Of a DNA stretch of 64,000 nt, positions 11,881 to 56,007 are shown piece by piece. The notes below the pieces were generated by a model. The model was not told the origin of the DNA. It searched no databases and saw nothing but the letters and a program-made list of their open reading frames with translations. Source of the stretch: Anthoceros angustus (Eukaryota; Plantae; Anthocerotophyta); the NCBI GenBank assembly GCA_010909165.1, contig VJWM01000025.1, forward strand, positions 1 through 64,000, read 5' to 3'. Position 1 is the stretch's first letter; each line of letters starts with the position of its first letter. The position numbers and the translations under genes are program-made.

Positions 11881-11897
11881 ATCTTCTTGGTGGACAA

Positions 11898-12080
11898 AAG
11901 ATGCTCGCCGAGTTTTCAAAAGCTTTGCCACGCAGGATGTGGTGACATTGAATACCCTAATCGCTGGGTGTGGTACTTGTGATCATGGTCAGAAAACACT
12001 AGCTTGTTTTGAGGAGATTTTAGTGGCCGGTAGTTAGCCTGATGGTGATACTTTTACTTGCCTTCTAGCGGCATGCAGAA
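11898..12080 (+). pseudogene. Inverted PPR fragment (S/P2/L2 region)
   Basis: DARRVFKSFATQDVVTLNTLIAGCGTCDHGQKTLACFEEILVAGS*PDGDTFTCLL matches DARQVFDSMATKDVVTWTALISGYGTCDEGHKALACFEEMLVAGVQPNDATFTCLL of copy A. Confidence 0.85.
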
Positions 12081-13558: not shown

Positions 13559-16500
13559 TCACGGTCGACCCTTACAACTGCAATAACCATTTGCGAATCG
13601 ATGCACGCGGTACCCATCCCTTACCACAATGTCTCTCTGTTCAAGCCTTGACATGATCTCCGTGGAACTGTGGCAGTCACTGCACATGCGTAGATTCTTG
13701 GTTACCACCAGAGGTGTCCCCTTTGGAGTGTTCAAGAGACCGAACGCCAGAGCTAGTTTCTCAGCATGCCCACAAAGCACATCTTCCTTTTCCTTCTCAC
13801 ACAGTGGCTTCAACACCAACTTTGTGTGAGGTACGTGGCCTCCTTCCTGCTTCAGACGTGCATTCTGTGCTTCTACCTTGCAATATCCTCTCCTTTCTCC
13901 CACCAGGAATCTATGTACCTGCTTATTCACCTCAATGGTCGCCACTGCAGGTTTCTTGTTAGCTCCTGCTACCGTTCTCTGTGTTTCAATCCTGTCGACA
14001 TCGCTCCACATACCTGCATCTGCATAGGCATTGGCCATGAGGACATAGGCGGTCGCCTCCTCGGGGTGCAGCCTAACAATGCTTTCGAAGCACCACCTCG
14101 CCCTCTTTATATCCCCGTGACTTTTGCAGGCATTCAACAAAGACGTCAAGCCCACAATATTGCTTTGGCCCTCGCATGATAGTAGCATCTTCTCGGCCTC
14201 ATCTAAATGGCCTGCACGCCCAAGAAGATCAATCATGCAGGTAATGCTCAATAGTAGGTTTGATGCCATGCTGTTCAGCCATGGAATCAAAGGCTGACTC
14301 CTGGACCAGTCCCTCATGACTGCATGCTACTAGAAGGCAAGTAAAAGTAGCATCATCAGGCTGAATACCAGCAACTAACATCTCCTCAAAACAAGCTAGT
14401 GCCTGTGACCATCATCACAAGTACCATACCCAGATATCAGGGCATTCCATGTCACCACATCCTTTGTGCTGTCAAAACCTGGCGTGCATCTTCCAGTTCC
14501 ACATTTTGCATACATGTCCACCAGGCAGTTGCCAACACTACGTTATCCAGCAGTCCTCTTTCAACAATCAGTGAGTGCAGCTGCCTGCCCTTCTGTAAGG
14601 CACCAGTGCTTGCACAGGCCTTCAGAAGGCAAGCAAAAGTAACATGGTCAGCCAACCAGGCCCTCCTGCTCCATTTGTCCATACAAACAAGTGCCTCATG
14701 TCCGAGCCTTGCTGCATACCCAGCAATCAGGCATTCCATGTCACCACATCCTTTGTGGCCAAGCTGTCAAAACCTGGCGTGCATCTTCCAGTTCACCACA
14801 TATCAGGGCAGTCCATGTCACCACATCCTTGCTGTCAAAACCTGGCGTGCATCTTCCAGTTCACCACATTTTGCATACATGTCCACCAGGCAGTTGCCCA
14901 CCACTACGTCATCCAGCAGTCCTCTTCCACAATCAGTGAGTGCAGCTGCCTGCCCTTCTGTAAGGCACCAGTGCTTGCACAGGCCTTCAGAAGGCAAGCA
15001 AAAGTAACATGGTCAGCCAAAATGAGGCCCTCCTGCTCCATTTGTCCATACAGAGCGCCATGTCCGAGCCTTGCTCATACCCAGCAATCAGGGCATTCCA
15101 TGTCACCACATCCTTTGTGGCCAAGCTGTCAAAACCTGGCGTGCATCTTGCATACCCAGATATCACCATGTCACCACATCCTTTGCATGCTGTCAAAACC
15201 TGGCGTGCATCTTCCAGTTCCACATTTTGCATACATGTCCACCAGGCAGTTGCCCACCACTACGTTATCCAGCAGTCCTCTTCGACAATCTGAGTGCAGC
15301 TGCCTGCCCTTCTGTAAGGCACCAGTGCTTCCACAGGCCTTCAGAAGGCAAGCAAAAGTAACATGGTCAGCCAAAATGAGGCCCGCCTCCATTTGTCCAT
15401 ACACAAGCGCCTCTTGGCGAGTCCTTGCTGTGCATACCCAGCAATCAGGGCAGTCCATGTCACCACATCCTTTGTGGCCAAGCTGTCAAAACCTGGCGTG
15501 CATCTTCCAGTTCACCACATTTTGCATACATGTCCACCAGGCAGGTGCCCACCACTACGTTATCCAGCAGTCCTCTTTCAACAATCAGTGAGTGCAGCTG
15601 CCTGCCCTTCTGTAAGGCACCAGTGCTTGCACAGGCCTTCAGAAGGCAAGCAAAAGTAACATGGTCAGCCAAAATGAGGCCCTCCTCCATTTGTCCATAC
15701 ACAACAAGCGCCTCTGAGTCCTTGCTGTGCATACCCAGATATCAGGGCATTCCATGTCACCACATCCTTTGTGGCCATGCTGTCAAAACCTGGCGTGCAT
15801 CTTCCAGTTCACCACATTTTGCATACATGTCCACCAGGCAGGTGCCCACCACTACGTTATCCAGCAGTCCTCTTTGACAATCTGAGTGCAGCTGCCTGCC
15901 CTTCTGTAAGGCACCAGTGCTTGCACAGGCCTTCAGAAGGCAAGCAAAAGTAATCAGCCCTGCTCCATTTGTCCATACAAACAAGTGCCTCATGTCTGAG
16001 CCTTGCTGCATACCCAGCAATCAGGGCATTCCATGTCACCACATCCTTTGTGGCCATGCTGTCAAAACCTGGCATCCTTCTTTGCATACCCAGCAATCAG
16101 GGCATTCCATGTCACCACATCCTTTGTGGCCATGCTGTCAAAACCTGGCGTGCATCTTCCAGTTCCACATTTTGCATACATGTCCACCAGGCAGGTGCCC
16201 ACCACTACGTTATCCAGCAGTCCTCTTCCACAATCAGTGAGTGCAGCTGCCTGCCCTTCTGTAAGGCACCAGTGCTTGCACAGGCCTTCAGAAGGCAAGC
16301 AAAAGTAACATGGTTAGCCAAAATCAGCCCTCCTGCTCCATTTGTCCATACAACAAGCGCCTCTTGGCCGAGTCCTTGCTGCATACCCAGCAATCAGGGC
16401 ATCCATGTCACCACATCCTTTGTGGCCATGCTGTCAAAACCTGGCGTGCATCTTCAGTTCACCACATTTTGCATACCCAGCAATCAGGGCATTCCATGTC

Positions 16501-17650
16501 ACCACATCCTTTGTGGCCATGCTGTCAAAACCTGGCGTGCATCTTCAGTTCACACATTTTGCATACATGTCCACCAGGCAGGTGCCCACCACTACGTTAT
16601 CCAGCAGTCCTCTTCCACAATCAGTGAGTGCTGCCTGCCCTTCTGTAAGGCACCAGTGCCCACAGGCCTTCAGAAGGCAAGCAAAAGTAACATGGTTAGC
16701 CAAAATCAGCCCTCCTGCTCCATTTGTCCATACAAACAAGTGCCTCATGTCCGAGCCTTGCTGCATACCCATATCAGGGCATTCCATGTCACCACATCCT
16801 TTGTGGCCATGCTGTCAAAACCTGGCGTGCATCTTTCAGTTCGCCACATTTTGCATACATGTCCACCAGGCAGTTGCCAACAAACAAGTTAGTAGGAATG
16901 CCACTGTGCAACACATCACAGTGCACTTTTCTGCCAGATTCCAAGTCGCGGCAAATGCACAAGCTTGAAGGGCAGCTACAAAGACGTGAGCATCCGCCTT
17001 CACTCCTGACATACACATCATATCGTACAGTCGTATGGCCTCCTTGGGTTTCCCGTGCTTGGCGTATGCAGAGATTATGGAAAACCACATGAAGGCATCT
17101 GGTTTGCCCACCCTGGTGAACACATCCATGGCCTCCTGCAGCCTACCTCCACATGCATACATGCGCAAGATATGGTTCCCCAAGTATGCGCCCGACTCGT
17201 ACCCAAGTTTGACAGTGAGGTCATGTACTCGTCGGCCCAAAACCAGATCCTTCTTAGCTCCACACAGTTTCAGCACAGCGTAAAAGAGAGACTGAGAAAT
17301 AGCAGAGTCTGTCTGCGCCAGAGATTCCAGGGCTCCAACGGCCTCAGAAAGCTTCCCCTGCTGACATAACGTGCTCACGGTTACAGCCGTAACGACGCCC
17401 ATTTCCGACCCTGCACGCCTGCCAGGTTCAGGCTTATCCGGAGAGCTGGACTTGGAAGGAGAGGCACCATGACCCATCTGCATATCCAAGGAAACGAGCT
17501 GCTCATCAACCCAAGCTGGCTTGAACATGTTGTTTAACCACAGGACCTCGCCGGACCCCTTACGCCGGAAGTCAGGCGAACGGGAGCTCTTCTTATCTCG
17601 TCTGTTGTCCCACCACATGGTAGGGTCCAGAAAAAATTGTTGCCACAACG
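13559..17650 (-). CDS. PDF-PLS PPR-E1-E2-DYW:KP (GRP) protein, copy B, with an expanded array of ~7 near-identical PLS triplets; 5'-truncated and multiply frameshifted in this assembly
   Basis: WQQFFLDPTMWWDNRRDKKSSRSPDFRRKGSGEVLWL at the 5' end; repeated HVTFACLLKACASTGALQKGRQLHS and CLVDMYAKCG; KKPAVATIEV, HAEKLA, CSDCH, CSCKGRP*. The 3' flank is homologous to that of copy A. Confidence 0.88.
14430..16880. repeat. ~300-360-bp tandem PPR triplet repeat array inside copy B
   Basis: ctgcccttctgtaaggcaccagtgc recurs at ~14585, 14950, 15304, 15602, 15896, 16251 and 16635. Confidence 0.95.
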
Positions 17651-18340
17651 CTTGCAAGCCTTACTTGGTTTTGTTGTCCTCAAACACCTAGAAGGGAAGC
17701 TATATTTCGCCAATCAAATGAACTTTAGCATATGCTCCAATTGCGCCGTCAGAGTCTTTTCCACGGCCGTCGAATGAGCAATTTTTGTATCCTCAAACGC
17801 CATGCCTCCTCCTTACGTTGTTGCCGCAATAATGCTCCTCTTCCGATCCGCCTCTCCATCTCCCATTTTTCCTTCTCCACCGTAGTTTAGATTGACTTTC
17901 CTCCCTAGAGAGCTCCATTTTCTCGAATCAAGACGACGCTTGCTGCGATAGCGAAGACCGTAAGAGCACACTGCAAACAAAACATTGCTTCTTGCATGTA
18001 TTTGTTGGTAGCTGTAACGACTTACATTCATTTCAGAATTGTAGCATCACGATAGCAAGCAGAAAAGCGGATGCCCCACGCTAGGCCCGATCCGCCTTTG
18101 GAGGTGCCTTGCGCTCATCAAGAGGGTGTTGTTCGCACACGCCTGCATAAATGGAGAAGCGGCGAGTCTCGTTGTTTCTTCTTCCGATATGGAAAGCCTC
18201 CCACCATCAACGACTTCACTGGTGGCAGCCCCTCATTTAAGTTCATCTCATGCCTAATATGGAAAGCCTCCCACCATCGTGGGACTTCACTTGGGAAAGC
18301 ATTGTCCTCATCTAAGTTCATGTAATCTTGAGGTTGTGAT
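17641..18340. repeat. Displaced duplicate of Harbinger interior 20160-20882 that truncates PPR copy B
   Basis: tgccacaacgcttgcaagccttacttgg...gaggttgtgat aligns to 20161-20883; the junction lies at the shared ttgccacaa. Confidence 0.9.
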
Positions 18341-27099: not shown

Positions 27100-28171
27100 A
27101 TCTCATGCCCATCGTTGTCCGAGCTTGTGCAAATTGTCCGTAGAGAGTCCCTTGGTAAGAATATCTCAGGTTCGGGTGTGAACCTTGACAAGTTGTACCT
27201 CTTGTCATCCAACACCTCTCGAATGAAGTGATATCACATCCACATGTTTAGTCTTCGCATGAAACATCGGATTCTTTGCCAATTGATAGCACTGCTATCA
27301 CAATGCAACAACAAACAACCTTGATCCCCAAGTCTCCCACTAAACGAGCAAGCCATATGGCTTCCTTGCAAGCCTGTCGCAACATACTCGGCCTGTGGTA
27401 GATAGCGAATGCACGATCGCAAACGAGATCGCCATGAGATCGCCTCCAAAGGCACATGAAGACATAACGATGTGGACCTCCTTTGTCCATATCCTCGATA
27501 ATCAGATCTGGTACCCAACCACATGCATCTTCACTACCAAAACATATGCACAAAGCTTTTGTACCATTCAGATACCTCATAACTCCTTTTATCGCCTCCC
27601 AATGCTTCTTGCCGTGGTTTGACATAAACTCGCTAACCACTCCCACCGCAAAGGCAATGTCGACGTAGCAATCATTGCATACATCAAACTCCCTACATGA
27701 TGAGTATGGGACCTTCTCCATTTCAGCTTTTGTCCTCCTCGTAGCTTGGGCAATCCGCTTGAAAGTTTCACATATGGAGGCAATGGAGTACCCAATGGCT
27801 TCTTCTCCATGTTGAAACGTTGAAGCACCCTATTAATGTATTCCGTCTCGAGACAAATAAAGCGGAGCTTATGCATTCCGCGAATCGCATGCCAAGTATA
27901 TGGCTCGCCTCTCCCAAGTCTGTCATTAAAGTGAGCATTCAACTTTGACTTCAACGAAATCTCATCACTGCTTTGAAGCATAGCATATCATGCACATACA
28001 GGATCAAAATGAGCAAGCTTTGACCCTTAGCTTGCTTTGTATAGAGACAATGATCCTCTTCGCTACGTTCGTAGCCTTGAGAAAGCATAAATGAGTGGAA
28101 CTTGTGATACCACTCTCTGGGTGCCTGTTTCAAACCATAAAGGCTCTTCCTCAACCTGCACACCAGATGCT
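27100..28171 (-). pseudogene. Copia RT 3' part and RNase H
   Basis: HLVCRLRKSLYGLKQAPREWY; LILYVHDML; VGSLMYAM; KHWEAIKGVMRYLNGT; ISWRS; EAIWLARL; LHCDS. Confidence 0.92.
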
Positions 28172-31100
28172 TGTGGTTTGGGAAAACCCGGGGCACTCCC
28201 GAGGTCCTCCCACTATAGCGGCCACACTTATCCCCAGCCTTACGTCGTTGGGTTTCGTCCCATGAGACTTGTGTGAAAGTTCGAGGCCTTGTGATCCGAT
28301 CGCTACTGCGGAGACACAACTTCTCGCCTTCTAAACAAGCAAGGCGCCTCTACTCTCCCTCTTCTGGCAGTGCACCACTTGCACCGCTCAAAAATCGCCA
28401 ATCCTCGACCTAGCGACACAACACAATTGCGAGTCACCTCGGCGAGCCTATCACGGGCGCCAGGGACCCCAGTCCACACCGCGATTTCGTCCCTACTTCT
28501 AAGACCACTCTTCTCCACTCGGGGCGCTCTTTTACTTGCAGTTGGGATTCGTCCCTTAGGCTCACTGTGGCCTTCCACTAACACCTACACCTCTAATCCT
28601 CTACTCATCTTCTCATCTTCTCAACCTCTTCCTCCTATTCTAACCTCGATTCGGGCTTCTTGGTTTGACTCGCCCTTACGGCTGGCTGCACAGGGTCGGC
28701 CTCCACCAGCAAGTTCTTCCTTGGGCGGTTGCTATGAGTTTGACACACGGTGAGAACCTCCAGTCTTTCCTGTAGTCTACCCTCAAGGAGTTCACAGGCA
28801 TTGCCACACACCCAAAGCAAAGCAATTTCACGGCAACCATTCACAAGGGGAGCAACTCGTTTAGGCACTTGCAGAGCAAGTCCTCCACCAAGCACTCCGA
28901 CCACGACTTCCTCTCAGACTGCGTTGGCTCACGGCACGAAATTCCTCTGTAATGGCAAAGGACTCGATGAGGGTGGGCGCAAGACATGATACTTTACTTT
29001 GTGAAATCCTCCTCCTCTTATAGGAGGCCTTCCACATACAACCTCCCTTGGGTGACCCTCTGCGGTCACCTTTTCCAATTTTCTATTATTTCCTACACTT
29101 GACATTTAATGCACCTAAATCTATTACGATCCTTGGTAAATTCTATTCTAGTAACTTCACCTAAGTCATCCTTGAAGGATGTCGTTACATCACCTATCCT
29201 TCTATTCTTCTATCTAGCATTTATGGTCATTGACCATTCTAGTCTTCACCTATTTGGGGTGGGGCATGTCTTGTGGATTGGCTCCTCGCCTCCTTTTGCT
29301 CTTGCCCCTTCCCTTTGTCCTTCCTAATGTGTGGGGCAAGTACAATCTTGCCCTTCCTCCATCTCCAGCGCCTGGATTCCGGTCCCCGGCAATCGCGCCC
29401 CGCGCTCTTTCTTCCTCTCCGCTGGTGGCCCGTTCATCGCACCCTACGCGGTGATCAGCGGACTAAAGGTGGTGACTTCTGGTAGTGATGCGCCCTATCT
29501 CCTTCTTTCTCCATCTGCTTCCTCTTGGGTTGGATCTTCATTGCTCTTCCTCTGTTTGATTTGTCCATACCTATCATGAGCATTAAATTCTTCCCCCCAT
29601 CTGGTGCTAACTCTCGGGCCCTTTTGCGTTGGTCTCCTCCCACAGCCTGGCTCCTCCCCTTCAGGTGGGGAGGTTCTCACCCTCCCCTTCCTCGGGGTGG
29701 ACCGTCCGTCTCTCTCCTCCGGTGGGGTTGTCTCCCACCACCTCTCTCCTCCAGGGGTATACTCGGACCCCGGCTCCTTCATCCTCGGCCGGCCTCGCCC
29801 GACTCCCCAGGCTCACGCCCGGTGATGCAGCGGACTACGGCGTGGTGTCAGTCTACCAGTGATGGCGGACTACGTGGTGGTGGTCACCTCGTGGTAGGTT
29901 GACCCCGGAGGTGGGCTTTCCCCCCTCCTTGCTCTCATCTTCTCCTTCCTCGGCCGCTCCTCTCCGACTCCTCAGTTCCTCGGAGTCCATTTCGATGGCC
30001 TCATCAAAATCGGAGGCCTCTGCACATGCGGCTCCTTCGTCATCATCATGAGGACCCAATGTCCTCCTCTTGGCCAAACGCAAGATCTCATTGTTGGCCT
30101 TCAAAATCTGTGTGGAGGTGAGCCCCAAGCTATGATATTGCATTTGGAGATCATCAATCTCGTGGGCCACTCTCCATCTTCACACCTACCTTGTAGGCGT
30201 CCCTTGAGGTGGTCAATTCCCCACCTTGACATGGAGGTCACATTCTCCTCCTCACTTCCTTTTGGTTGGCCAATTTTGCTCAAGGGCATAGTCCGCCCAA
30301 AATCGCTTCTCACCACCATTGTGCACCACCTTCTTGTGGCGCTCCTCCTCTTGGAACCTCCTTTGTTCCAATTTATTCTTGGCAAGTCTTTCCTTCTCCA
30401 CTTGCCACTCTTCCTCCGCTCAATTCTTGTTTGGTCTTGAGCCTGCTCGCGCTCTCCTCCAAATTGAACTGTCCTTCTCTTCTTCCATGTCCGGATCTTG
30501 ATGGCTTGGTAGCCATCACCCATCTTGTCCAATTCTTTGGACCGCTATCTTCTCCCTAGAGCCTCTGTTTTGCCCTTTCGTCTTGCTCTAATTGGGCAAA
30601 ATGCTCCTCCCTTTGTCCATGAATCCCGTTGGGTGGTTGCCGAATGGCTCTTTCTTGACTGCGACAACCTTCCCTCAGGACCTTCTCGCGCTCATCCATG
30701 AGGTCGCGTTGGAGCTTCTCTGACCTTTTCCTTGGCTGCCTTTCATCGGACTCCATGGCCTCCAATTGCCATTTGGTCCTGCCTTCCTCCGGCCATGTCT
30801 TGGGCCTTCACTTCCTCTTGCATGCCCACAAGGAGGCTGCTAGGTCCTAGCCCCTTCAAATCCACGGTGAGTGCTTCACAAGCACCAGCAATTCTCCTAG
30901 GGGTCCTAATTCCACCCTCTCTTCTTCTTCTTGGAAATTTCCAGCTCTCCACCTCTCGGGCCATCGCCGGGCGGTCCCTTCCGTCGCTCCATCCGCTCTC
31001 CCCGGTAGCGGAGATGGTGGCCTCGGCGCCGCGCGCCTCGTGCTTCTCCTTCCGAGAGCCTGCTTTGCCCTTTCGTCTTGCTCTAATTGGGCAAAATGCT

Positions 31101-34100
31101 CCGCCTTGCTCCATGAGTCCTGGGTTGTTGGTCGAATGGCTCTCTTCCCTTCCCTTCTAGACTTCTCCGCTACCGCTCATCCATGAGGTCGCTGGAGCTT
31201 CTACCCAGCTTCGCTTTTCATCGGACTCCATGGCCTCCAATTGCCACTTGGTCCCCGCTTCCTCCGCCATGTCTTGGGATTTCCTCCTCTTGGCATGCCC
31301 ACAAGGAGGCTGCTAGGTCCCTAGCCCCTTCAAATCCACGGTGAGTGCTTCACAAGCACCCAAAGAATTCTCCTAGGGGTCCTAATTCCACCCTCCGCCT
31401 TCTTGCCGGAAATTTCCAGCTCTCGCACTTCGGCCATCGGGGGGTCCCTTCACTGCCGCTCCATCCGCCTCCCACCGCGGAGATGGTGGCCTCGGCGCCG
31501 CGCGCTCACTGCTTCTCTTCCCTTCCGCCAGAGGCTGCCCGCCAGGCGGGGTGCCTCCACCGGTAGGTCGCTCCCACTGTGGTAGTCCGCCTACCTACCA
31601 TGGTGGTGGCGCCTACAGTGATGCCCACCCTTGGGTGGCGCCTCCCTCTGGGTAGTGCGGGTGCCTCTCTCGTAGGCACAAATGAGATGGTGGGGACTCC
31701 CCACCCTTGGGGCATCACCCCTCTGTAGTCCTTCTCTCATAGACTACCATTCGGCCTTCGGCGGTTCTTCTCCCTTGCTTGCTCACTGTGGGGAAAGATT
31801 CCCACTAACCTTGTTGCCTCCATCTCCTCTTGCTTCTAGCATGCTTGTGGAGTCGACCTCCCGTCTTCTCAATGCAAAAGGCAAAGGCCTTTCCAACTCG
31901 GCTGGAGATGGATGACCTCAAAGGATGCCATGCATCTTCAAGCTCCTTGCTTGTGAGAAGTCCCTCGGTTTCCCATAAATGCACCAAATAGGTGCTAAGG
32001 TAGCGAGGGGCCTTCCTTCCTCATCCACCGAATTTGGCTTGAGGAGCTTCTCTGGTGGATGTACGCTTCATACATGATGGTTCCCCAATCGGCTTGGCTC
32101 CCATGGAAATCTTCCACAAAATTGGAGGAAGTTGGTCTTTGAAATAAGAAGTGCGTTGGTAATTTACCAACCCGGCACAATCTTTGCGAAGAGCCTCCAC
32201 TTGACTCCTTGATGCTCTCTTCCTCCGGCCATTCTTGGCGTGGGCCTTCACTCCTCCATCCATCATGTCGAGAATTCTTGCGGAATATCGGAGATGTCCT
32301 CTTCCCTCCATTTGACCTTTCGAGGAGAGCAATTCCAGAGCTCTCTTCCTCCGGTCTCCGTACACCTGTCGAATGCTCCTTACGGTCCAGCGGGATCCGT
32401 TCAGCATTCCCTTCCGTGTAGCGGCGAGGCTGCTTCCGATTGATGGAGGTTGATGTAACACTCCTCAATCAATTCCAAATTGGTGTAGGCCCATTGGCGC
32501 CATACACCCATCCTAATTGGATGTTGTCTTCGCCCAGAAAATCCACTAGATCCACAGGGTTGGGCCACCAAAAGCACGTAAATTGAGGCATTAAAAGTTC
32601 GCCTCACGGCGATCCCTCCACCCTTGTTGCCCTTTTCCCTTCGAGGAGGAACCTTTGGCGGTGGCTCCTTCTTCTTGCCTTTCCCTTTCGAGGAGGAACC
32701 TTTGGCAGGTGGCTCCTTCTTCTTGCCCTTTCCTGCTCGAGGCATGGCGATGCCTTCCTTTCCAAACGCTGCTAGGGGAGTAAATTACCTCCCAACTGGC
32801 AACCTCAAGACTTTGTTCTCAACGCTCCTTCTTCTCAAGTCCGGCAGCAAAACCTTTCTTAACACCCAATTTCAACGTTAGGCTTGGTGATGCTTCCCAG
32901 CTGTTGCAACTTTTCTTCGCGATTTCTTCTTCGAGACGCACCGGCCACATGGTCCTCGCTCGCTCTCAATTTTCTTATCCTTGCGCGCTTCAAGTGCCCT
33001 GGGCCAGTGCCTCCGCTCTGTCGACTCAGATTCGTGACACTGGCGCTCTCCCATGTATCTGAGGCTTGGAGGTCTCAATGCCTCGAATGTTTGGCGCTTT
33101 CCTCTTCTCCAAGTGCTTCAAGGAAGGAATTACTTTCAATTGGAGTTTCAAACTCCACTCCTAAACACACTCCTTCCACGGTTGTGGCAACAACACTCAC
33201 TCGCAATACACGTTAGCTCCGGCTTAAGTTCTCCATTCGCCAATCTCTTCTCCGTGGTCCTTCTTAGGCGGGGCCGCATTGTTCACGCTCTTCGCCTCAA
33301 TCTTTCAGCCACAGCACTTTGAGTGCGGCGCCTTTCTGGCTCCGCTCCACACCTTCTTCTTCAATAACCCGAGACGTGTGAAGAGCTCTTCCTCTTCTTC
33401 GCGGCTTTCTGCGTTTTTTACCGGTCGCTCGCGCCTCGTGGTTGGGTCCGGTTCTTCCTTTATGAAGCGCGCGCAGCCTTGCCTCGCTCCCAGCCTGCTC
33501 GCAGTGATGGCAGCTCCCCTCTCCTCGCAGCGATGGTAGCCTTCCTTTCTTTTGCGCTTACGCTCCAATTCCAGCTCCAGCTCTAGCTTGATGCCTCGAT
33601 TCGAAGAGAGTTTCGCTGTACTTTTGCCCTTCTTAGATGTCTGCCACCTGGCGGCTGCACAACCCTAGATTGGGTTCATCATTCCAAAATCTTAATTCTA
33701 TCTAAACTACTTATTTTCCTATCCTGCCCGCTATTCCTAATTAACCGCTTCCTAATTACTCTATATAGCTATTTCCCTATTGTGAGCATATATAGTGGAT
33801 ATCCCCCCCGCTATTCTAATTTCCCTTTTTGGCCGAGACGCCTTCAGCCTACCACGGTAGTCTTACCGCGTAGCCTGCTTTCCTTCTCAGCCTACCGGCT
33901 GTGGTGTGGCAGCCTACGGTGGTAGTCTGCCAGCCTACCAACCCTTCGGACCGCCCTCCTGCCTTATCTGGGGGTCGTTTTGACCCGTTTTTCTTCCTGG
34001 GATATCCCTTTCACTTCCCTAACAATAGTTTACAACTTCAGCTTCAAGATCCTCATAAGTTTTCCTGGCATGCTCTTCCTCAATTGTTTCTAGCCAAAAA

Positions 34101-34162
34101 AAATCAAACTTGTCCATCTTTTGGCCAGTCTGGACCGGTTGCCCAAACTTTTACGTTCCACA
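28172..34162. mobile_element. ~6-kb insertion with TG...CA ends and 5-bp TSD; solo-LTR-like, no gag/pol
   Basis: ATGCT|TGTGG ... CCACA|ATGCT; removing it restores Copia RT ..EKGKEHLVC.. Confidence 0.85.
29853..33570 (-). pseudogene. Degenerate long ORF(s) of unknown function (basic N-terminus, coiled-coil C-terminus) within the 6-kb insertion
   Basis: Chain of minus-strand frames: KGKKKEPP repeats; WRQWAYTNLELIEE; YLVHLWETEGLLT; charged heptad segments ..AHEIDDLQMQYHSLG.. Confidence 0.5.
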
Positions 34163-37100
34163 ATGCTCTTTGCCCTTCTCAACAAAACCTTCTGGTTGCT
34201 GCATGTCCCTACTAGAAAAGGGCACCCTATGTTACACTTTATGTTAAGATTTGGACCCCTGGATGTAACACTCATGTTGCAATTTTGGGGTCATGTAACA
34301 CTTTTTGGGCCCCTTGTTACACTTTGGCTTGGAAACCATACCACGGCCGTTGTTGCAATCATGTTGCAATGGTGTTGCAATTATGTTAAGATGAAGTGAG
34401 AGGTGGTTTTGCCTCTCTCAAAATTGCAACATGATTGCAACATCTAAAGTGTTACAAGAGAGGTCTTGTAACACTTTTGGAGGCTTGGTACCGAACCTCC
34501 TCCCCATCCACTATTCCTTTTACTTTTGCCCTTGCAATACCACGTTTACTTGGTAGTTACCATGTCGCCCTTCAATACGACCATATATAAAATACATCAA
34601 TACATCCTTATACTATACACATGTAGTCTACGATAAATGTAATATATTATTCTAAGTGCTATAAGGCGTATTCAATTTCATATAAAATAAGTTTGTATAC
34701 TATGTATTCCATCGTACCTACATATTCATGATGCATACTATGTATTTACTATACGTGTAAATAGCGCGCTCTTTCTACCCCTACTTTATAGCATCGGCGC
34801 GGTTTGTCCTTCCACGTCACCAATAGCCAGCGGCTTCATAGCCCCCACCTATCACCTTATTGTGACGCATCACGTGAGGTTATGCCCCTACAAGATTGTC
34901 TTTGTGCGGAGGAGTTTTGGTATGCTCGGCTTATGCTTTTACGCCTCCATGTAAGGCACTTCCTACTCGTCATCGTATGCACCCTAAAACTTCCGCCCTC
35001 CGTTCGATTCCCAATTTTCTTCTTCCTCCGCTTGCTCGGAGGCAAGCTTTGCCACTTCTACCGCTTCCCTCCACCGCCTGCACACGTTGCACATACAAAC
35101 CAACATGGCCATCATGAGTTACCCAACGTTAATGGGTGTACCAATCACCAGTGACCATTTGCCTTACCTTCCTCGGTCCCTCCTCGTATCTTACGCCCTT
35201 CTTGGTGGGCATTTCCTCGTCCGTCCTTCTTCTGTCGCGGCCGTGCCCTTATCGCCAGCCGGCCGCCTCTACTCCTCCTCCTCTTTTCCTCTTTCGCGCC
35301 ACCCCTTTATCGCGGTGGCGTTGCCTCAGCGGGCTCCACTATGTAGGTCCATGCTCTCGGCATCGGAGGCTGCAAGATATGTGTCTGCACGAAATTAGGC
35401 ACATCGTCCTCTTGACTGCCTCTTGGATCGTCCACATGTCCATGTCCCCGTCTGTCCCCTTGCCTCGCATCATGCCTTTTGGCCTTTGCAAAGGCGCACG
35501 CATGCCCTCTTGAACCTCCTTCATTCTCTCTCCCCACGACATCGCCTCATGCTAGTGCGCCTTTTGGCCCCGCCCGAGCATGGATGCCGGGTGATCCTTC
35601 TTGTCGTCCCCCCACCCGCTCCTCCTACTCCCCTGCGTTTTGGCTGTCCATAGCACACAAGTGTGTTTCCTCACAGTGACGGATCGGTTGCCCCCTCGTG
35701 GTCCACCACCCGACTCACGCCTCCACACTCATTGTTCACGCCATTCAGCGTCGTCAATCCATCGATCCCAACGGCCTCCACCCTCCGCAAACATGGCGTC
35801 ACCTTGGGTCTCGGGCACTCCTCCACCTCTTCTCCATTGCTTGCTGCCCACGTGACCCTGACCTCTGCCTCCAATCACACCATTCCCATGCGGCTTCCAC
35901 CAAACACAGGCGATCGTGGTGTCGCGGGCACCACAATTTAAATCCTCTTGTCGATCGTTTCCCCTCTGCTGCCTCCCCTCACCTTGCGCCTCGTGCGCGT
36001 GGCCCGTCTCCACTTCACCGCTCTTGTTTCATTCGCCTTTCCCCCTTCCAATACGTGTCGCCTCCTCTCCTCCTCCCCAAGCCCCTTCCGCCATGCATTC
36101 CTTCCTAGCCTCTCCACGTCCACGCCACCACGTGCTGCTCCTCCACCCCTTCCTTCCGTCGCCTCGGAAGGCCACCATATCGGGATCCATCTCCAATTCA
36201 ATGTCATTAAGCAAAATGGTCATTTCCTTGTTCTCCTTGCAATGGCTGAATCTACGGTGTCTTGTCATACACTCCACCTTACCCAGTAGGAACTCGCAGA
36301 ACCCCCACTATCGCGGACCGCCCAGGCGCATGGAAATCCTCTTCAACCTCCCATACTCGCCTCTTCTTCCGTTGGAAACCGCCATCTTGATTCTCAAACC
36401 TCACCACCCAGCCAGACGCCTCCCTTTCCCCATGGGTTTGGACCCATCCCCGTTTTGGCTAGCCTCTCTTTTGCTGCGATTTCGTACTTGATGGCTCAAA
36501 CTTCCGTTCCTCTTCAACTCCATCCGAGCCCATGCAAGTGCATCTTCCCACTCTTCGTCATCCACCATGCTCGGTTTCTTCCCATGTCCTCCCCTCTACC
36601 ATTTCCCCGCTCGCATCTTCCACACATCGAGAATTGCGTGTCCGCGTCATCTGCGAAGTGTCGGCTTATCTTGGACTTGACCACGTGCACCACCGCTGCC
36701 TCCACCCCTTCCTTCCGTCGCCTCGGAAGGCCACCATATCGGATCCATCTCCAATTCAATGTCATTAAGCAAAATGGTCATTTCCTTGTTCTCCTTGCAA
36801 TGGCTGAATCTGTGTGTCTTGTCATACACTCCCGCCTTACCTCAGGAACTCGCAGAACCCCCACTATCGCGGACCGCCCACAGGCGCATGGAAATCGTCC
36901 TCTTCAACCTCCCATACTCGCCTCTTCTTCCGTTGGAAACCGCCATCTTGATTCTCAAACCTCACCACCCAGACGCCTCCCTTTCCCCATGGGTTTGGAC
37001 CCATCCCCGTTTTGGCTAGCCTTTTGCTGCGATTTACTTGATGGCTCAAACTTCCGTTCCTCTTCAACTCCATCCGAGCCCATGCAAGTGCATCTTCCCA

Positions 37101-38449
37101 CTCTTCGTCATCCACCATGCTCGGTTTCTTCCCATGTCCTCCCCTCTACCATTTCCTCTAGCGCGCCCGCAGCCTTCCACACATCGAGAATTGCGTGTCC
37201 GCGTCATCTGCGAAGTGTCGGCTCTTGGACTTGACCACTGTGCAGGAATGCTTGACACGGATTTCACTAAGTGCTTTCTCTTCTTTGAACGTCCGCCATC
37301 TTGCGTACCCGAGTTCATTCACAACCTTCGTCCTCACGGATTAATGCCTTCTTGCTCGCCACCCAACAACATGAGTCCCTCCCCGCTTCATGTGGTTTGC
37401 ATGGCCTCCTTGACCATTTCACCCCATGCTTGTTTATCAAGGCTTTAACGCATCGTTGTCCACCGCACTCACCGCGCGCCAAGATCAGACTGTCATCATC
37501 ACCGCGGTTAGAACACCACCCCTTTAAAATTGATTGCGCCATTCGAGATCAAGTGGCGTCATCCGTCTCACGCTCGCGGCTTGTCCGCCTTCCACGATTC
37601 CACTTTCCCTTCTTGCAATCGCCACCGCCCGCCTCGAAAGGTTGCCTCCCTTGTCCCCATGCTTAAACACCGCCAAGATGCGGTGCTCTGTTACCCGTTT
37701 GTCCACCATGCCCACTCACCCAGCAAACCGTGTGCACACTTTGCGTCACTTGCGGCAAAGTGTGCACTTGGTGCACACTTTGCCGCATCACTTGCCGTTA
37801 AATCGACTCGCGACAACCAACCTCATCCGACGTAAATAGCTCCTCCTCTATGTCGTTCAATTCTTGCACGCAATGCTCCAACTCCGCATCCGTGGGTGGG
37901 AGGTTCAGATCTCGGCGTCGTCAAAATCAACTCCTGCTCAGACCATCTCGCCCGCCTCTTACCTTCACCTGGCCGGTCTTGAGGAGGCCGCTTCGCCGAT
38001 GTCGAATGAAGACCGCGGTGCGGGGATGAGCGACCGAGGCCGGTTGCCCCCATCCTCCCCACCCGGGACACGGTCCATCGTCGTCGACGCGGCCGCCCGT
38101 GGTGGTGGCCAGACCGACTCGCCCGAAGCCTCCGCCATACTCTCCACCTTGAACCGGTTGTCCACCGCCGTTCCATCAAGGCAATGGCTTCCTCTCGGTG
38201 AAAGGCCATGAGTCCCTAGTGCATTCAAGACAGCCATTTTGAAAAAGCTTGTTTTGCAAAGGCCGAGCAGGTGGTCATTTACTGCTATCGGCCGGGACCA
38301 GCGCGCTGCCTGTGCACTTGCTACTTGCCCATAATCACAACAGTTTTCTGACCACAACCTCGACAGACTGTGGAGCAATTTTCATGTCCCATTGGTTACG
38401 TTGTGCGTTACTCGTGATGTATGATATTGCCCAAATGGCGCAGCGCTCT

Positions 38450-41400
38450 CAATGCCCCCATTACTCCATTTTAACAGTAATCATCGACTTCCTCTGACCA
38501 TTCCCACACGTCACTTGGGTATTGGCACATTCCGCCATTGGATCTGCTTGTTTGTTTGGAAATACTTTAATGCCCACTTGGCATCTGGTTTTGCCCCCAT
38601 CCGTCACTACTCAAACGACATGCCACAATCTATGTGCCACGCATGGGTTCCTCCTCTCTCCATCCCTCGCCGGAGTAGGCACGGCCAAGGCCCACCCTGT
38701 TCCATCCACCTCCGGATGCATGCATTGAGTTACTGCGATGGCCACACAAATGGACCATCGATGGAGTGCACTGCACGGAAACCTTCTCGATTCACAAGGT
38801 CAAACCCGGTGTCGACTTCGCGATGGCCTTGTCCTCCCGGCCGACACTCGTACCATCCAACCTTCAACGAATGGATTATACTCGAAGCGCATCCGCAGAT
38901 TTGCTCTATGTGGCCGTAGAAGACGCTCCTCTTGAGCTCCCGCAGCCCTGTCCCACCCATGATAAACTTTGCACCGCACTATCTTTTGTGCTCCGCCGTT
39001 GTCCGCCTCACTGCTCGAGGTGGCTGCCTTTGTTCCACATGTGACTATGTGCGCAACGCGGGCCATCCATTATAGCCCTCACTTGGTCATAGCAGGATGC
39101 CCCTCCCAAGCGCTCACCGCCCTTCTTGTGCACCCACCTCTTGAAACTTCGTTCCTCATGTGCACCGTACATCCTCACCTCTTCGTCGTACATGTCCAAA
39201 AACGGCTGCATCACCTTCGTGTGATACAGCACATAAGTATGGGCCTGGCGCACCTCAACGGCATCCATTGTGTATGACGGCCGACACCCAACTTTTCTCC
39301 CACGGTCCTCGGGACTCCATGATCCACCGACGTGACCATAGTAACGCGGAGGAATGACATGCCGAAATGCATACTCTCCTCTCTCATATACCCCACGGCT
39401 ATCTTGGACTCGGTTTGTGGCGCATGCCCGCTTCTGGATCCTAAGTATCTCTCCACCGGGTACATCCACCGGTGTGCAGGGCTCACCACCTCGTCCACTA
39501 AATGTATTATGAGGTGGGTTGATATATCAAAGACCTTTGGAGGAATTGCTTTTCCAGAGAGCACATCACCCGCACAGCCTCTTCTCGTTGTGCTTGAATT
39601 TCATGGCCCGGTATTGTCCGCTGGCAAATCCATCTGTACAGTCGACCCAATTTCACAACCGCCTTGTACACCTCTGGGTCTATGCACCCCCGAAGGACGA
39701 TGGGGAAGATGATTTCCAGCATGATGTGCCAGTCATGGCACTTCAAGCTGCCCACTTTGCCCCCCTCTAATTTCGCTCCTATGTTAGACCCATAGCCTGT
39801 GGGCAGCTTTATGCGTTTAATTCCCTCTATGACTTGACGGAGGTCGTCTTTCGCCAAAACGTAAGACGCCTCGGGGCAATGGCAGTCCTCTCCTACCGGC
39901 CACAACCACCTTTTCCCTCCATTGGCTTCCATGTCCATCCTTGATGCTAGGTCGCCTCGCTCCGTCAAAGTGTGCCATATGGCCTCTGCATTGTTCTTTT
40001 CCACGTGCATGACATCCTTTGGCGCCATCACAAGAGGTGACGCCAATATGGGAGCACCCTAAACAGAGAAGACATCCGCGCGTTCCAAAATTTCCTCATT
40101 GCGGATCTCGGCGGTGGCACCTTCTCTCATATACCCCACGGCTATCTTGGACTCTGGTTTCTGGCGCCTTGCTTCTGGATCCTAAGTATCTCTCCACGGG
40201 TACATCCACAGTGTGCTGGGCCAATGCGACCACCTCGTCCACTAAATGTATTATGAGGTGGGTTGATATATCAAAGACCTTTGGAGGAATTGCTTTTCCA
40301 GAGCACATCACCCACTCTTCTCGTTGTGCTTGAATTTCATGGCCTTGTCCATTGGCAAATCCATCTGATCGACCCAATTTCACAACCGCCTTGTACACCT
40401 CTGGGTCTATGCACCCCGAAGGACGATGGGAAGATGATTTCCGGCATGATGTGCGATCATGGCACTTACCACTTTGCCCCCTCTAATTTCGCTCCTATGT
40501 TAGACCCATAGTGGGCAGCTTTATGCGTTTAATTCTCTATGACTTGACGGAGGTCGTCTTTCGCCAAAGCAGGCGCCTCGGGGCAATGGATCCTCTCCTA
40601 CCACAACCACCTTTTCCCTCCATTGGCTTCCATGTCCATCCTTGATGCTAGGTCTCGCTCCGTCAAAGTGTGCCATATGGCCTCTGCATTGTTCTTTTCC
40701 ACGTGCATGACATCCTTTGGCGCCATCACAAGAAGGTGGATATGGGAGCACCCTAAGCAGAAGACATCGCCGCGTTCCAAAATTTCCTCATTGCGGATCT
40801 CGGCGGGTGGCGCACCTTCTGCGTACCATATCTGTCACCACATCATCAAGCGTTGGTGGTGGGGACGGAGTTCCGTCCATCGTATCCATGTCTTCCCACC
40901 GTCCGCTATCTCCGGGCAACCACCTCTGCCAACATAAACCTGCTTTTTAATTGATGAGAATAGCGGGAATCCAGTCCACCGAATCCACACACGCGGGTCC
41001 CTTTCACTTGCAATCCATCGGTGCCCAACCACAGGTAGTCGGCAATGACGCGTTCTGACACGCGCACCTAAAATGCCTCCTAGGATCGTTCACGGTATTG
41101 AAAAGTCTTCCATGTCCACCCCTCTCCACAACTCTTCCGGTTCTTCTACCGGGCGCCATATAAACATCAAAATTTTTACCATGCCCGGTCTGGTACAATG
41201 AGAGGCATGATGACATGGGCGTCCTTTGTGCAAGCCTGTGGAGGCATGTTGTGAACGAATAGCATAACGGCCATATGGACGTGTTGACGGACACTGACCA
41301 AAGGGGTTGAAGCTCGTGCATAATGCCAACCTCAAGTTGCGAGGTTCATCCCGAACCCTTCAAGCGCATCAAATACTCTCCATGTTGGGGTGTCGCCATC

Positions 41401-45639: not shown

Positions 45640-46790
45640 TAGACGAAATGGCATGCAACACTTGTCCTTGGGTCAGGGGATGATTAAATGCAAATTGTCT
45701 TATTGGAGGAAGATGGCATTGCGAACACTTGTCCTTGCCAGGATGATTAAATGCAAAATTGTCTTATTGGAGGAAGGTGCACAGTGGAATCATTTGTCCT
45801 TGTGTCAAAAATGGTAATCCACAAAGGGCAAATTGTCCTTGGCTCTCCAAATGGTCATCCGAATGGCCAAAATTGACATGAGGCAAAGACATGGTCATGA
45901 CGAATGAGGAACATTTGTCCTTGGGTCACGTGATCATGCATGATGGGAATGTATTGTCCTTGGACCACGAAGTCTCCTCCTCTCTCCTCTTCCTCCCTCC
46001 CCACCGCACCGCGCCGCCCCACGCACCACCACCACACACCATGGCCACCGCCATACCGTCACCACGGGCTCGGAATGTGGTCGCGACATCGCCGCATCGC
46101 TGGATCGGTAGGCAATGTGGTATGCAGAACGGGCAAAGCATAAAAATAGCAAATTAACACATGCATGGTCCGTGGAGCATGGCGGGTTCTAAGTCGGTCT
46201 CTTGAATGGCATGCCACATCCGTGCATTACCGACGAAATGGCATTGCGAACACTTGTCCTTGGGTCGCCAATAGGGATGATTAAATGCAAAATTGTCTTA
46301 TTGGAGGAAGGCGCACAATCATTTGTCCTTGTGTCACAATGGTAATCCACAAAGGGCAAATCCTCTCCAAATGGTCATCCGTAATGGCCAAAATTGACAT
46401 GAGGCAAAGACATGGTCATGACGAATGAGGAACATTTGTCCTTGGGTCACGAAGTGATCATGATGGGAATGTATTGTCCTTGGACCACGAACGGTAATGA
46501 ACAATGGCAAATTATTGTCCGTCGATCGAAAATGATCTTCCATAATGGGAAACATTTGTCCTTGGCTCAAATGGTCATCCGTAATGGCCAAAATTGACCG
46601 AGGCCAAGCATGGTCATGACAAATGAGGAACATTTGTCCTTGGGTCACGAAATGACCATACATAATGGGAATGTTTTGTCCTTGGACCACGAAATGCGCA
46701 TGAGCAAAGGGAAATTATTTTCCTTCGATGCGATATGGTAATCCATAATGGGCTAAATTTGTCCTTGGATGACGAAAATCATAAACACGG
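45640..46790. repeat. Degenerate ~41-42-bp tandem array inside the En/Spm element
   Basis: ttgtccttgg core recurs at ~46436, 46474, 46515, 46556, 46634, 46677 and 46759. Confidence 0.75.
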
Positions 46791-49700
46791 ATGCCTATAT
46801 ATGCCAAACATGCATGGATGCCATATGCATGTAATGGTGTGGTGGACAATCAAGTTGCGCGTGTTTTAGGCATGTGAATGCCACATGTACACATATAGGT
46901 GGTGGGCGCAAACTCCGAGTTTGTGCCCGCAAATCGGCATGCATGGCACATGAGCCACCGGCATGCCCTAGGACTTGCGCCCGCCTCTTCTCCTCTTGCC
47001 CTCTTCCCCATCACCAGGGTTACCTCACCGCCTTGTCGCCATCGCCACGGAGTTCTGCTCACTTTGTCGCGTTATCGGTTGTGCATGCGGTGTGACTCGG
47101 TTGGCCTTCCTCGACCATGGTTTGGGACGTTGACTTTGAGGATTTGTCCGCTTAAGCTCGAACAACGCCGCCAATCCGCCGCGGATGTCGGTGCCCATAA
47201 CGTCGCCGGGAAGGAGGAGTGGGGGCCCATCGACGGCTTGCGCCATGCCGAGAGGAGAGGCCGAAGCCGGAAAATGGTCCACAAGGGGACTTGGCGCAGA
47301 GCGAGACGGCGCCCAACGGCCGGATGGAAGCACGCACGGGATGGTGGAAGCGGCAAGTGAGGTGGGCGGTCGTGGAGAAAGCCGATTCCACCAAGTGGAG
47401 GGTGGATGCCCATGGCGTGGCGGAAGCGGCGAGAGGTGGAGGTGCCGAGGGAGAACCTTCATACAGGAGTGGAGTCTGCCAAGAGGCGGGCGATGCTCGG
47501 CGCGGCGGGAGTGGTGTCTCCAAGTGGGGAGCTAACGCCTGCTTTCTGCAGGAGAGATTCCAAAGTCGGAGGAGGGATTCGCCAGGCGACATCCGGAGGG
47601 AACGAGGACATTGGCCTTAGTCTGGAGCTTGAGGGTGTCCAACTTGAGGAGCATGGTGGTGGTGCACAAGAGGGTGACCCTGCCGAGAGATGGCATACGT
47701 TTTGTGGACCTTCCGCTGGGTGGCGGACAACCCCAACAACGTGGCGGAGGGAGCCTTTGAGGGGAGGAGACTCTGCGGTGGGAGTGGAGACCGGTCTCTG
47801 GGTGGACGCGGCGGAGGAGGGCCAAGGAGCGCATGCCTATGATGGTGAGGAGGGCGGTGAGGAGGAGGACACCAGCGCGAGGATGGGGAGAGCGGGAGCG
47901 AGGAGGAAGATGTGGAGATGGCGGATGCCGAGGTCGAGGAAGACATGCCGACTACATTGCCAGACATGAAATTGGAGAATTGACGAGCACCGGCCGGTAA
48001 GCCATTAGACGCGATGTCATAGCCGTGTTGTGTGCTACATGGCGTGGTGGCGTGTACATGGCGTGAGCCGGTTATGCGATGGAGGGTGGATAGAGAATGA
48101 GGAGGAGGATGAAGAGTCGTCCGATGAGGAAGGACGAGTGAGGAAGGCCTTCCACCGTGTGTTGGAGCTAGTGTGTGCAAAATGGAGTGATGTGCCATGG
48201 TCGAGCCACGACGAAAGTTTGCGAAAGGCGGTGAGGAAGGTAGAGTATGAGTTTGCAAGTATAGAGCGCGAGGATATTGTGGCCAGTTTGCGGTGCATCG
48301 CGGACAAGGAACCACAATGTGGGCAAGAAGGTGCGGTCGCAATGTGGAGGAGAAGGGAAGGATGCAAAATGGTTGCATCCGCCTAATGTGAGCACGAAGG
48401 CATGGAGAAAGGTGGCAGCAAGCCGTGGTGACGTTAAGCATGGGGTGTGTGGCCAACACGCGCGCCGCAACGCAAGAACGAGCATGGGACGAATCCCTTT
48501 GGTCCGAGGAGCAAAGGAGTTCGAGAAACGTATGTCCAACGCGGGAGGGAGCGCAACTGGATGAGTTGAAGTGGGCAGCAAGGCATGGAATGGACCGAGT
48601 AATCTTGGAGTGGTAAAATAGTCGTTGACTTAATGGAATGCTTGGTTGTGATATGTAGGTTTCGCTATGTAGGACGTGAGTGGGTGTCTCCAGTGGGGAG
48701 CTAACGCTACTTTAGGAGAGATTCCAAAGTCGGAGGAGGGATCGCCAGGCGCGACATCCGGAGGAACGAGGACATTGGCCTTAGTCCGGAGCTTGAGGGT
48801 GTCCAACTTGAGGAGCATGGTGGTGGTGCACAAGAGGGTGACCACAGCGGCTGCCGAGAGATGGCATACGTTTTGTGGACCTTCGCTCGGTGGCGGCGGA
48901 CAACCCCAACAACGTGGCGGGAGGGAGCCTTTGGAGGAGGAGACTCCTGCGGTGGGAGTGAGACTGTCTGGTGGGCGCGGTTGCGGAGGAGGGCCAAGGA
49001 GCGCCTATGATGGTGAGGAGGGCGGTGAGGAGGAGGACACCAGTGGCGAGGATGGGGAGCGGGAGCGAGGAGGAAGATGTGGAGATGGCGGATCGAGGTC
49101 GAGGAAGACATGCCGACTACATTGCCAGCATGAAATTGGAGAATTGAGCACGGCGGTAAGCCATTAGGCGATGTCATAGCCGTGTTGTGCTACATGTGGT
49201 GGCGTGGTGGCGTGTACATGGAGTTATGCGATGGAGGGTGGATAGAGAATGAGGAGGAGGATGAAGAGTCGTCCGATGAGGAAGGACGAGTGAGGAAGGC
49301 CTTCCACCGTGTGTGTTGGAGCTAGTGTGTGCAAAATGGAGTGATGGTGCCATGGTCGAGCCACGAAGTTTGCGAAAGGCGGTGAGGAAGGTAGAGTATG
49401 AGTTTGCAAGTATAGCGCGAGGATATTGTGGCCAGTTTGCGGTGCATCGCGGACAAGGAACCACAATGTGGGCAAGAAGGTGCGGCAATTCGAGGGAGAA
49501 GGGAAGGATGCAAAATGGTTGCATCCGCCTAATGTGAGCACGAAGGCATGGAGAAAGGCAGAGCCGTGGTGACGTTGCGAGCATGGGGTGTGTGGCCAAC
49601 ACCACGAAGGCCGCAACGTCGGCAAGAATTAGCAGCATGGGACGAATCCCTTTGGTCCAAGAGGAGCAAAGGAGTTCGAAACGGTATGTCCAACGGGAGG

Positions 49701-54830: not shown

Positions 54831-54939
54831 AAAATCGACACTGAAAACACTACTGCCCTTTAGTGTCAAAGAAGAAATCCACCGTGCGTCTGTATTTTGC
54901 CGTTGACTATTCCACTGGTTTCCGCAATATTTCGTAATT

Positions 54940-55925: not shown

Positions 55926-56007
55926 TCTGGATCACTGCAATTCCACGAGCTCCACCAAGAAAATTCTAGCATCACAACACAACCAAACCAAAGCTGCTCG
56001 ATACGCT

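Follow-up and report, generated by a model that had tools for sequence, protein, structure and literature searches.

The first 64,000 nucleotides (nt) of contig VJWM01000025.1 from the hornwort Anthoceros angustus (GenBank assembly GCA_010909165.1), hereafter the window, carry two related PLS-class pentatricopeptide repeat (PPR) genes on the same, minus strand and about 6 kb apart: gene B (17657-13559), the subject of this analysis, and gene A (7590-4565), its comparator. The centre of gene B is a repeat array (16887-14459) in which a three-motif PPR cassette occurs seven times, as against twice in gene A. The codons that vary among the copies of this cassette are enriched for those that read RNA, and the reading frame of the array is broken by small deletions.

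Two PPR genes of the DYW:KP class

Pfam searches with the open reading frame (ORF) pieces of gene B return PPR, PPR_1 and PPR_2 together with E_motif (1.7e-11) and DYW_deaminase (3.6e-34). At the C terminus, a KP box (KKPAVA) replaces the PG box, the zinc-binding residues HAE and CSDCH are present, and the protein ends in GRP; in alignments, this end is 64-71% identical to intact homologues ending in GGRP or DRH. Both KKPAVA and a terminal CSCKGRP are common to genes A and B, which align to the GGRP-ending homologues P0003, P0034 and P0080, and the same alignment has KKPGVS at the KP-box site of P0072, a homologue of the E+ type. With the layout (P1-L1-S1)n-P2-L2-S2-E1-E2-DYW:KP, gene B has every sequence feature of a GRP-type PPR-DYW:KP gene that was tested except an intact frame, and by these features it is classed as a GRP-subgroup PPR-DYW:KP gene, belonging to a class of candidate organelle U-to-C editors. 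The initial annotation of this locus had also taken the array for a PLS-class PPR array in a gene of the U-to-C type, and the DYW:KP end with its GRP bears this out. GRP and DRH are the two hornwort subgroups of DYW:KP proteins and candidate U-to-C editors (PMC9478123; for the hornwort GRP subgroup, Gerke 2020 and Gutmann 2020 as cited there), and designer GRP proteins, the only GRP proteins with known activity, carry out U-to-C editing in E. coli (PMC9478123).

The array is flanked by parts that can be compared directly with gene A. In the N-terminal part of gene B (16888-17657, minus strand), a single OSB-type PDF motif (~17648-17500) is accompanied by the initial PPR motifs, which are not repeated; this part belongs to an ORF at 16836-17657 with a Pfam PPR match, and tblastn of the intact homologue P0003 (on a 3.7-kb Logan contig from run SRR33208242) follows one single frame from 17654 to 16977. 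Relative to gene A, this part has a 1-nt deletion near 16948. The C-terminal tail (13559-14458, minus strand) comprises P2-L2-S2-E1-E2-DYW:KP and ends with CSCKGRP and a stop codon; compared with gene A it carries a 1-nt deletion (~14404), a 2-nt deletion (~14242) and two net 6-nt deletions. An ATG was sought ahead of the PDF motif of gene B and is absent, a TAA stop stands, by reading, just before the frame (~17660), and only from this motif onwards is gene B homologous to gene A.

Gene A proceeds from PDF motifs through S-SS and two P1-L1-S1 cassettes to P2 and onwards to a DYW:KP domain of the GRP type. Its C-terminal 403-codon ORF is intact, and its S motifs contain TTTTT. In the flanks, synonymous divergence (dS) between the two genes is 0.25 on the C-terminal and 0.21 on the N-terminal side with an omega (dN/dS) of about 0.25 (0.18-0.30 for the C-terminal 403-codon ORF), and the A-B comparison found no substitution-made stop codon in the flanks of either gene. 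Purifying selection thus acted on both genes during most of the time since they separated. Cassette identity between them reaches 96-99%.

The OSB-type PDF motifs (..WWDNRRDKK..PDFRRKG..LWL..KPAWVDEQL) precede the PPR tract in frame; gene B has one of them and gene A at least two (7371-7189 and 7020-6860), and a further copy is found at 8033-7931, about 440 nt upstream of the gene A ATG. The intact homologue P0003 also bears a PDF motif.

Architecture of the repeat array

Across 14447-16073, Tandem Repeats Finder detects repeats with periods of 297 and 365 nt and 90-91% matches. Segmentation of the minus strand by three anchors, followed by alignment of each motif class, resolves the array into eight S1, seven P1, seven L1 and four SS motifs, that is, seven cassettes and an eighth S1. 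The alignments have 93 (S1), 93 (SS), 108 (P1) and 105 (L1) columns, and the consensus of each class, computed from the window's own copies, translates without stops into 31, 31, 36 and 35 residues, respectively. The consensus P1, L1 and S1 motifs read VVTWNALIAGYA..., HVTFACLLKACA... and VVVGxCLVDMYAKCG..., and since they comprise 36, 35 and 31 codons, the P1-L1-S1 cassette measures 306 nt. Over ungapped columns within the array, identity is 98% for L1, 94% for S1 and 89% for P1, and two P1 haplotypes, LGHEALVL and LAKEALVV, can be told apart by eye in the alignment. Where about seven near-identical triplets had been described before, seven copies do exist, but they are not uniformly near-identical, P1 falling behind L1 and S1.

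Read along the minus strand, unit 1 (16596-16887) consists of S1 (16887-16796; codon 5 AAC = N), whose 5' half is diverged and resembles the first S of gene A, P1 (16795-16695; N at codon 5, last codon N) and L1 (16694-16596). Unit 2 (16209-16595) has S1 with T at codon 5, SS (16505-16415; N at codon 5), a P1 (16414-16313; codon 5 damaged, last codon N) that is a mosaic of both P1 haplotypes, and L1, while unit 3 (15856-16208) has S1 (again T at codon 5), an SS with a 16-nt deletion (16118-16043), a P1 that has lost its 3' end including the last codon (16042-15952), and L1. Unit 4 (15559-15855) combines S1 (T at codon 5), a P1 of the LAKEALVV haplotype (15763-15664; N at codon 5, last codon D) and an L1 (15663-15559) that is the sole motif copy with its full in-frame length, 105 nt; unit 5 (15264-15558) combines S1 (T at codon 5, TTG at codon 27), P1 (15466-15366; codon 5 ACT = T, last codon D) and an L1 with GGA at codon 12. 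In unit 6 (14908-15263), S1 (N at codon 5) is followed by an SS with 7- and 17-nt deletions and codon 5 lost (15177-15110), P1 (N at codon 5, last codon D) and an L1 whose last codon is GAC (D); in unit 7 (14543-14907), S1 (N at codon 5) has a 9-nt deletion and is followed by an SS with ACT (T) at codon 5 and a 15-nt deletion (14824-14748), P1 (N at codon 5, last codon D) and L1. The eighth S1 (14459-14542; N at codon 5) is the final repeat ahead of the P2 motif. By reading, units 2-3, 4-5 and 6-7 pair up, the two members of each pair carrying the same variants and agreeing in whether SS is present.

In its DNA, the SS motif consists of 36 nt from the start of P1 and 57 nt from the end of S1, joined at a TATGCA (G/M-Y-A) that both share. 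This composition suggests that SS motifs are products of out-of-register recombination between P1 and S1. Besides the four SS copies of the array, an older, in-frame copy is seen in gene A at 6171-6079. The 76-91-nt partial repeats of the array were also considered as junk generated by microhomology, and this was rejected: because gene A carries the 93-nt unit in frame, the partial repeats are SS motifs.

Variation at the RNA-reading codons

The codons that specify the RNA target, positions 5 and last of the motifs, vary among the copies, and each codon that the initial annotation had named is as it had described. Codon 5 of S1 is AAC once, then ACC four times and AAC three times (N,T,T,T,T,N,N,N, at 16875, 16583, 16196, 15843, 15546, 15251, 14895 and ~14530). 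The last codon of P1 is AAC at 16697 and 16315 and GAC at 15666, 15368, 15014 and 14649, and is deleted in the third copy. Codon 5 of P1 and SS is ACT at 15454-15452 and 14812-14810 and otherwise AAT, barring two deletion-damaged copies (16402 and 15165). Variation is also enriched at code codons, as that annotation had expected: 5 of the 8 are variable, compared with 17 of 125 others (one-sided Fisher p = 0.003). The latter count follows hand curation of the variable columns; with the conservative filter that preceded it, the comparison is 5/8 with 18/125 (p = 0.004), with SS merged into P and S it is 4/6 with 14/96 (p = 0.008), and counting the code codons of P and S only gives p = 0.017. 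The enrichment is nominally significant (p ~0.003-0.02), resting on one window, about five events and one frame-broken gene copy. A per-site dN/dS analysis has just two genes, A and B, to compare.

These counts could be taken as the mark of a working TALE-like module, in which cassettes are duplicated and positive selection of single-base changes at positions 5 and last yields new U-to-C specificities. Apart from the enrichment itself, this explanation would account for the observation, made by reading, that three of about eight unit-private substitutions fall on code codons (the fifth of P1 in unit 5, the fifth of SS in unit 7 and the last of L1 in unit 6). Several findings nevertheless make it improbable. 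First, code positions are the most variable, fast-evolving sites in otherwise conserved PPR motifs (PMC5075784), so that an excess at code codons is an expected signature of the family and by itself no proof of a dedicated mechanism. Second, the 17 variable non-code codons are spread over all four motif classes (P1 codons 8, 9, 17, 18, 20, 23, 30 and 32; L1 codons 12, 13, 28 and 29; S1 codons 3 and 27; SS codons 8, 9 and 27); the variants at SS 8, 9 and 27 repeat changes seen in P1 and S1, and the P1 non-code variants represent its two haplotypes. Because these codons vary too, and with P1 only 89% alike, the label "TALE-like" under which the array had been introduced is unfit. Third, the code codons had been said to be toggled by recurrent point changes, whereas they fall into blocks (N, TTTT, NNN for S1 codon 5 and NN?, DDDD for the last codon of P1) for which about five events suffice, and whether the last codon of P1 is N or D always goes with the allele at a synonymous CTG/CTC site that lies 12 nt upstream. 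Fourth, the cassettes of gene A share alleles with the array (S1 T and N, L1-last D and P1-last N), so that new mutation is unneeded. Since these alleles recur in gene A and the P1 at 16414 is a mosaic, exchange and shuffling of existing variants would explain the pattern as well as new mutation does.

Finally, the array as assembled has no intact frame, and gene B therefore cannot demonstrate the rapid generator of new RNA specificities that the initial annotation had seen in it; the gene is also without a start codon ahead of its PDF motif and has frameshifts even in its C-terminal part, which is less repetitive. Moreover, the array variants themselves may be assembly errors, an outcome that the same annotation had named as one that would speak against its reading.

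Frame-destroying deletions: technical error or decay

On the minus strand, ORFs are fragments of 30-99 codons within the array and of 30-273 codons over gene B as a whole. Compared with the in-frame alignment columns, 25 of the 26 motif copies are shortened, by 65 deletions that remove 178 nt in total, and there are no insertions. All 12 S-type motifs of gene B have four T in CAGGTTTTGA, where an in-frame QVFD requires five, as in gene A; they read CAGGTTTTGAC and run into a stop, whereas gene A has CAGGTTTTTGAC, which translates as ARQVFDSMATKDVVTW. Further deletions recur at GGACTC, GGGCCTC and GAAAGAGG in most copies and in both genes, each of these sites being intact in at least one copy. 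A continuous ORF with a start codon and a targeting leader is not found in gene B, for which assembly error may account.

Natural mutation is expected to produce roughly one indel per ten substitutions. In the array, about 31 distinct deletions (by count) compare with 22 variable codons, so that the share of indels is far above natural expectation, and if a quarter of natural indels are assumed to be insertions, a spectrum of 31 deletions to no insertion has a probability of ~1e-4. Gene A is frame-broken only in the stretches that are close in sequence to gene B: its ~16 deletions (by count) all lie in gene-B-like stretches and none in ~1300 nt of diverged sequence (p ~6e-6), and where 8 deletions fall in ~370 nt with ~16 substitutions, the next 400 nt have ~34-50 substitutions and no deletion. 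Because they are deletion-only, recur at runs of G and A in both genes and are confined to near-identical stretches, the deletions look like consensus errors of long-read sequencing. Published Anthoceros assemblies were built from R9 Nanopore reads with miniasm/racon or wtdbg, plus Pilon, and repeats are known to retain errors after polishing with short reads (10.1101/2021.10.14.464465). A technical origin of most of the deletions is probable and would be compatible with partial true decay.

Several observations weigh against such an origin, and most of them would be expected if gene B were a genuine decaying pseudogene, in which a T-run frameshift arose in one S-type motif, the dead array was amplified and homogenised neutrally, and the other deletions are real. 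The four-T run occurs in 12 of 12 S-type motifs, including both edge copies, which adjoin less repetitive sequence, while gene A, whose local sequence reads alike, has TTTTT; a true frameshift carried across a dead array would fit this. The argument from the edge copies is weakened, as the genome may hold, in other places, paralogues nearer to gene B than gene A. In addition, gene B has neither a start codon before its PDF motif nor a leader, the homology of gene A stopping at that motif; in the C-terminal part, where divergence from gene A is 9%, the deletions of 1 and 2 nt are uncompensated; and deletions of 4-17 nt, among them several of 7-17 nt, are not homopolymer errors. The under-representation of GRP proteins in transcriptomes (PMC9478123) also speaks for a pseudogene. 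A same-species protein or transcript against which the frameshifts could be checked was not found in word-index protein searches with the 571-codon ORF of gene A, the 90-codon ORF of the array and the 252-codon C-terminal ORF of gene B as queries; the best matches were 49-63% identical and came from other species, and the array ORF had no match in its length range.

Under this alternative, the variation at code codons would be a relic of functional ancestors or would have been imported from functional paralogues by gene conversion. It is a real possibility, although the less probable one. Natural mutation would not be expected to give 65 deletions and no insertion, nor deletions about as frequent as substitutions; the deletion alleles are shared with gene A, whose C-terminal ORF is intact and under purifying selection (omega 0.18-0.30), the deletions follow repetitiveness rather than position, and no substitution-made stop is present anywhere in the flanks of gene B.

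Origin of the array

The difference in cassette number (seven in gene B and two in gene A), the similarity of the cassettes (89-98%) in comparison with a flank dS of ~0.25, and the mosaic P1 together show that the cassettes were multiplied recently, and unequal crossing-over or gene conversion is a fair inference as to mechanism. The pairing of the units conforms to these processes as they act on tandem repeats and tandem paralogues. The initial annotation had proposed the same two processes with the addition of point changes at code codons; the former can be retained, and for the latter there is no need.

A much more sceptical view is that the number and order of the cassettes are artefacts of assembly, reads of many paralogous cassettes having been collapsed or mis-joined so that the array, some of its variants included, is not real as drawn. 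The density of deletions is indeed very high, and the second SS copy (16118-16043) is garbled in its middle. In gene A, at 5683-5676, the hybrid GCTGAACC has both the GAC and the AAC of the last P1 codon, and through its extra base gene A regains the frame that it lost 17 nt upstream. This hybrid has the look of a consensus drawn from mixed reads of different cassettes. An array of 2.4 kb, however, is normally spanned by long reads, the orderly unit blocks (pairs 2-3, 4-5 and 6-7) resemble successive duplications, and on both sides the array passes cleanly into the unique N- and C-terminal sequence, all of which makes this view very improbable.

The account that we favour on balance, with limited confidence in it as a whole, is that of a GRP-type gene with amplified cassettes, shuffled variants and mostly technical deletions. 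In this account, the 306-nt cassette would have been multiplied to seven by unequal recombination between repeats and between the tandem paralogues; the 93-nt SS motif, made of a P1 head and an S1 tail, is present in four units. The few substitutions that distinguish the cassettes fall preferentially on RNA-reading codons, and these variants would have been inherited and shuffled as blocks, not made by repeated toggling. The small deletions that destroy the frame would mostly be consensus errors of a noisy long-read assembly in a sequence too repetitive to polish. Of these elements, the sequence directly shows the architecture, the amplified cassettes, the enrichment at code codons and the loss of frame, whereas recombination as the mechanism and a technical cause of the deletions are deduced from it.

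Two further features lie between or beside the genes. A dispersed repeat of 320 nt occurs, with 87% identity, at 8998-8677 upstream of gene A and at 11750-11430 downstream of gene B, and the segment whose duplication yielded the two genes may be bounded by these copies. Between the genes, on the opposite strand, an isolated PPR fragment of 60 codons (11897-12076, plus strand) is 52% identical to residues 635-694 of P0003 and has 81% DNA identity to gene A at 5520-5340; it is probably a relic of another paralogue.

Comparison with known systems

Gene B shares with the GRP-type PPR-DYW:KP proteins the arrangement (P1-L1-S1)n-P2-L2-S2-E1-E2-DYW, the KKPAVA box, HAE with a CxDCH motif and the terminal GRP. 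It differs from them in its broken frame and in having near-identical central cassettes, whereas the motifs of the intact P0003 are diverged, and it bears a PDF motif. Since its triplets are diverged, as judged by eye, P0003 offers no parallel for near-identical cassettes. Our literature search, which did not cover Gutmann 2020 and Gerke 2020, returned no report of near-identical PLS triplets or of their concerted evolution or internal duplication.

A parallel for the mode of change is given by the restorer-of-fertility-like (RFL) clusters of P-class PPR genes in angiosperms, where unequal crossing-over or gene conversion alters the number of motifs and makes chimeric genes, with variation concentrated at RNA-contacting residues (PMC5075784). 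Genes A and B resemble these clusters in being tandem paralogues with high similarity within the cluster, a change in motif number and mosaic units. In contrast, RFL genes are of the P class and built from a single 35-residue motif, while gene B is of the PLS class with a 306-nt cassette of three motifs, positive selection being only a possibility in its case.

The arrays of TAL effectors, to which the label of the initial annotation referred, likewise consist of tandem near-identical repeats, in each of which one or two residues determine the nucleic-acid specificity. They differ from gene B in fold, in target (RNA in the case of gene B) and in kingdom, and gene B has 17 variable non-code codons and only N/T and N/D alternatives at its code codons. 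The likeness is therefore an analogy only: identity at all but the specificity residues does not hold for gene B, and its array is without an intact frame.

Other features of the window

Beyond the PPR genes, an ORF at 60847-61656 on the plus strand has Pfam domains of a Pol beta-barrel (3.5e-21) and a GAG-pre-integrase (6.2e-11) and represents a fragment of a Copia-type retrotransposon. It was the only match in a Pfam scan of the eight ORFs of at least 200 codons that the window has besides the PPR pieces, so that the scan yielded no single-copy gene as a control for the frameshifts. Strand composition shifts at 28000-40000 and 46000-52000: GC skew falls to -0.36 and AT skew to between -0.2 and -0.3 at 28-40 kb, and GC skew rises to +0.40 at 48-50 kb. 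A block of 65% GC occupies 54000-56000, and the ORFs of at least 200 codons in these regions are without a Pfam match.

Implications for hornwort RNA editing

In hornworts, RNA editing affects many organelle sites and runs in both directions, and PLS-class PPR genes are present in very large numbers. Cassette amplification would bear on how so many editing specificities arose. If confirmed in the DYW:KP class, it would mean that editing factors, too, can evolve in a way hitherto described for Rf-like P-class genes. The locus of gene B alone cannot carry this claim, because its frame is broken and its local base accuracy is doubtful. For PPR arrays in long-read hornwort assemblies generally, accurate reads are needed before codon-level inference.

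With these reservations, we put forward as a tentative and, at present, rather unlikely idea that in this hornwort the genes for U-to-C factors of the GRP type evolve as a system of 306-nt P1-L1-S1 cassettes, in which gene conversion keeps the units almost identical across paralogues, unequal crossing-over alters their number, and diversity is retained or selected specifically at the code codons. If true, new editing specificities would arise quickly, and gene B would be among the products of this process, perhaps a defective or poorly assembled one. Natural scaffolds that are near-identical and differ at code residues would also match what designers of synthetic PPR editors build by hand.

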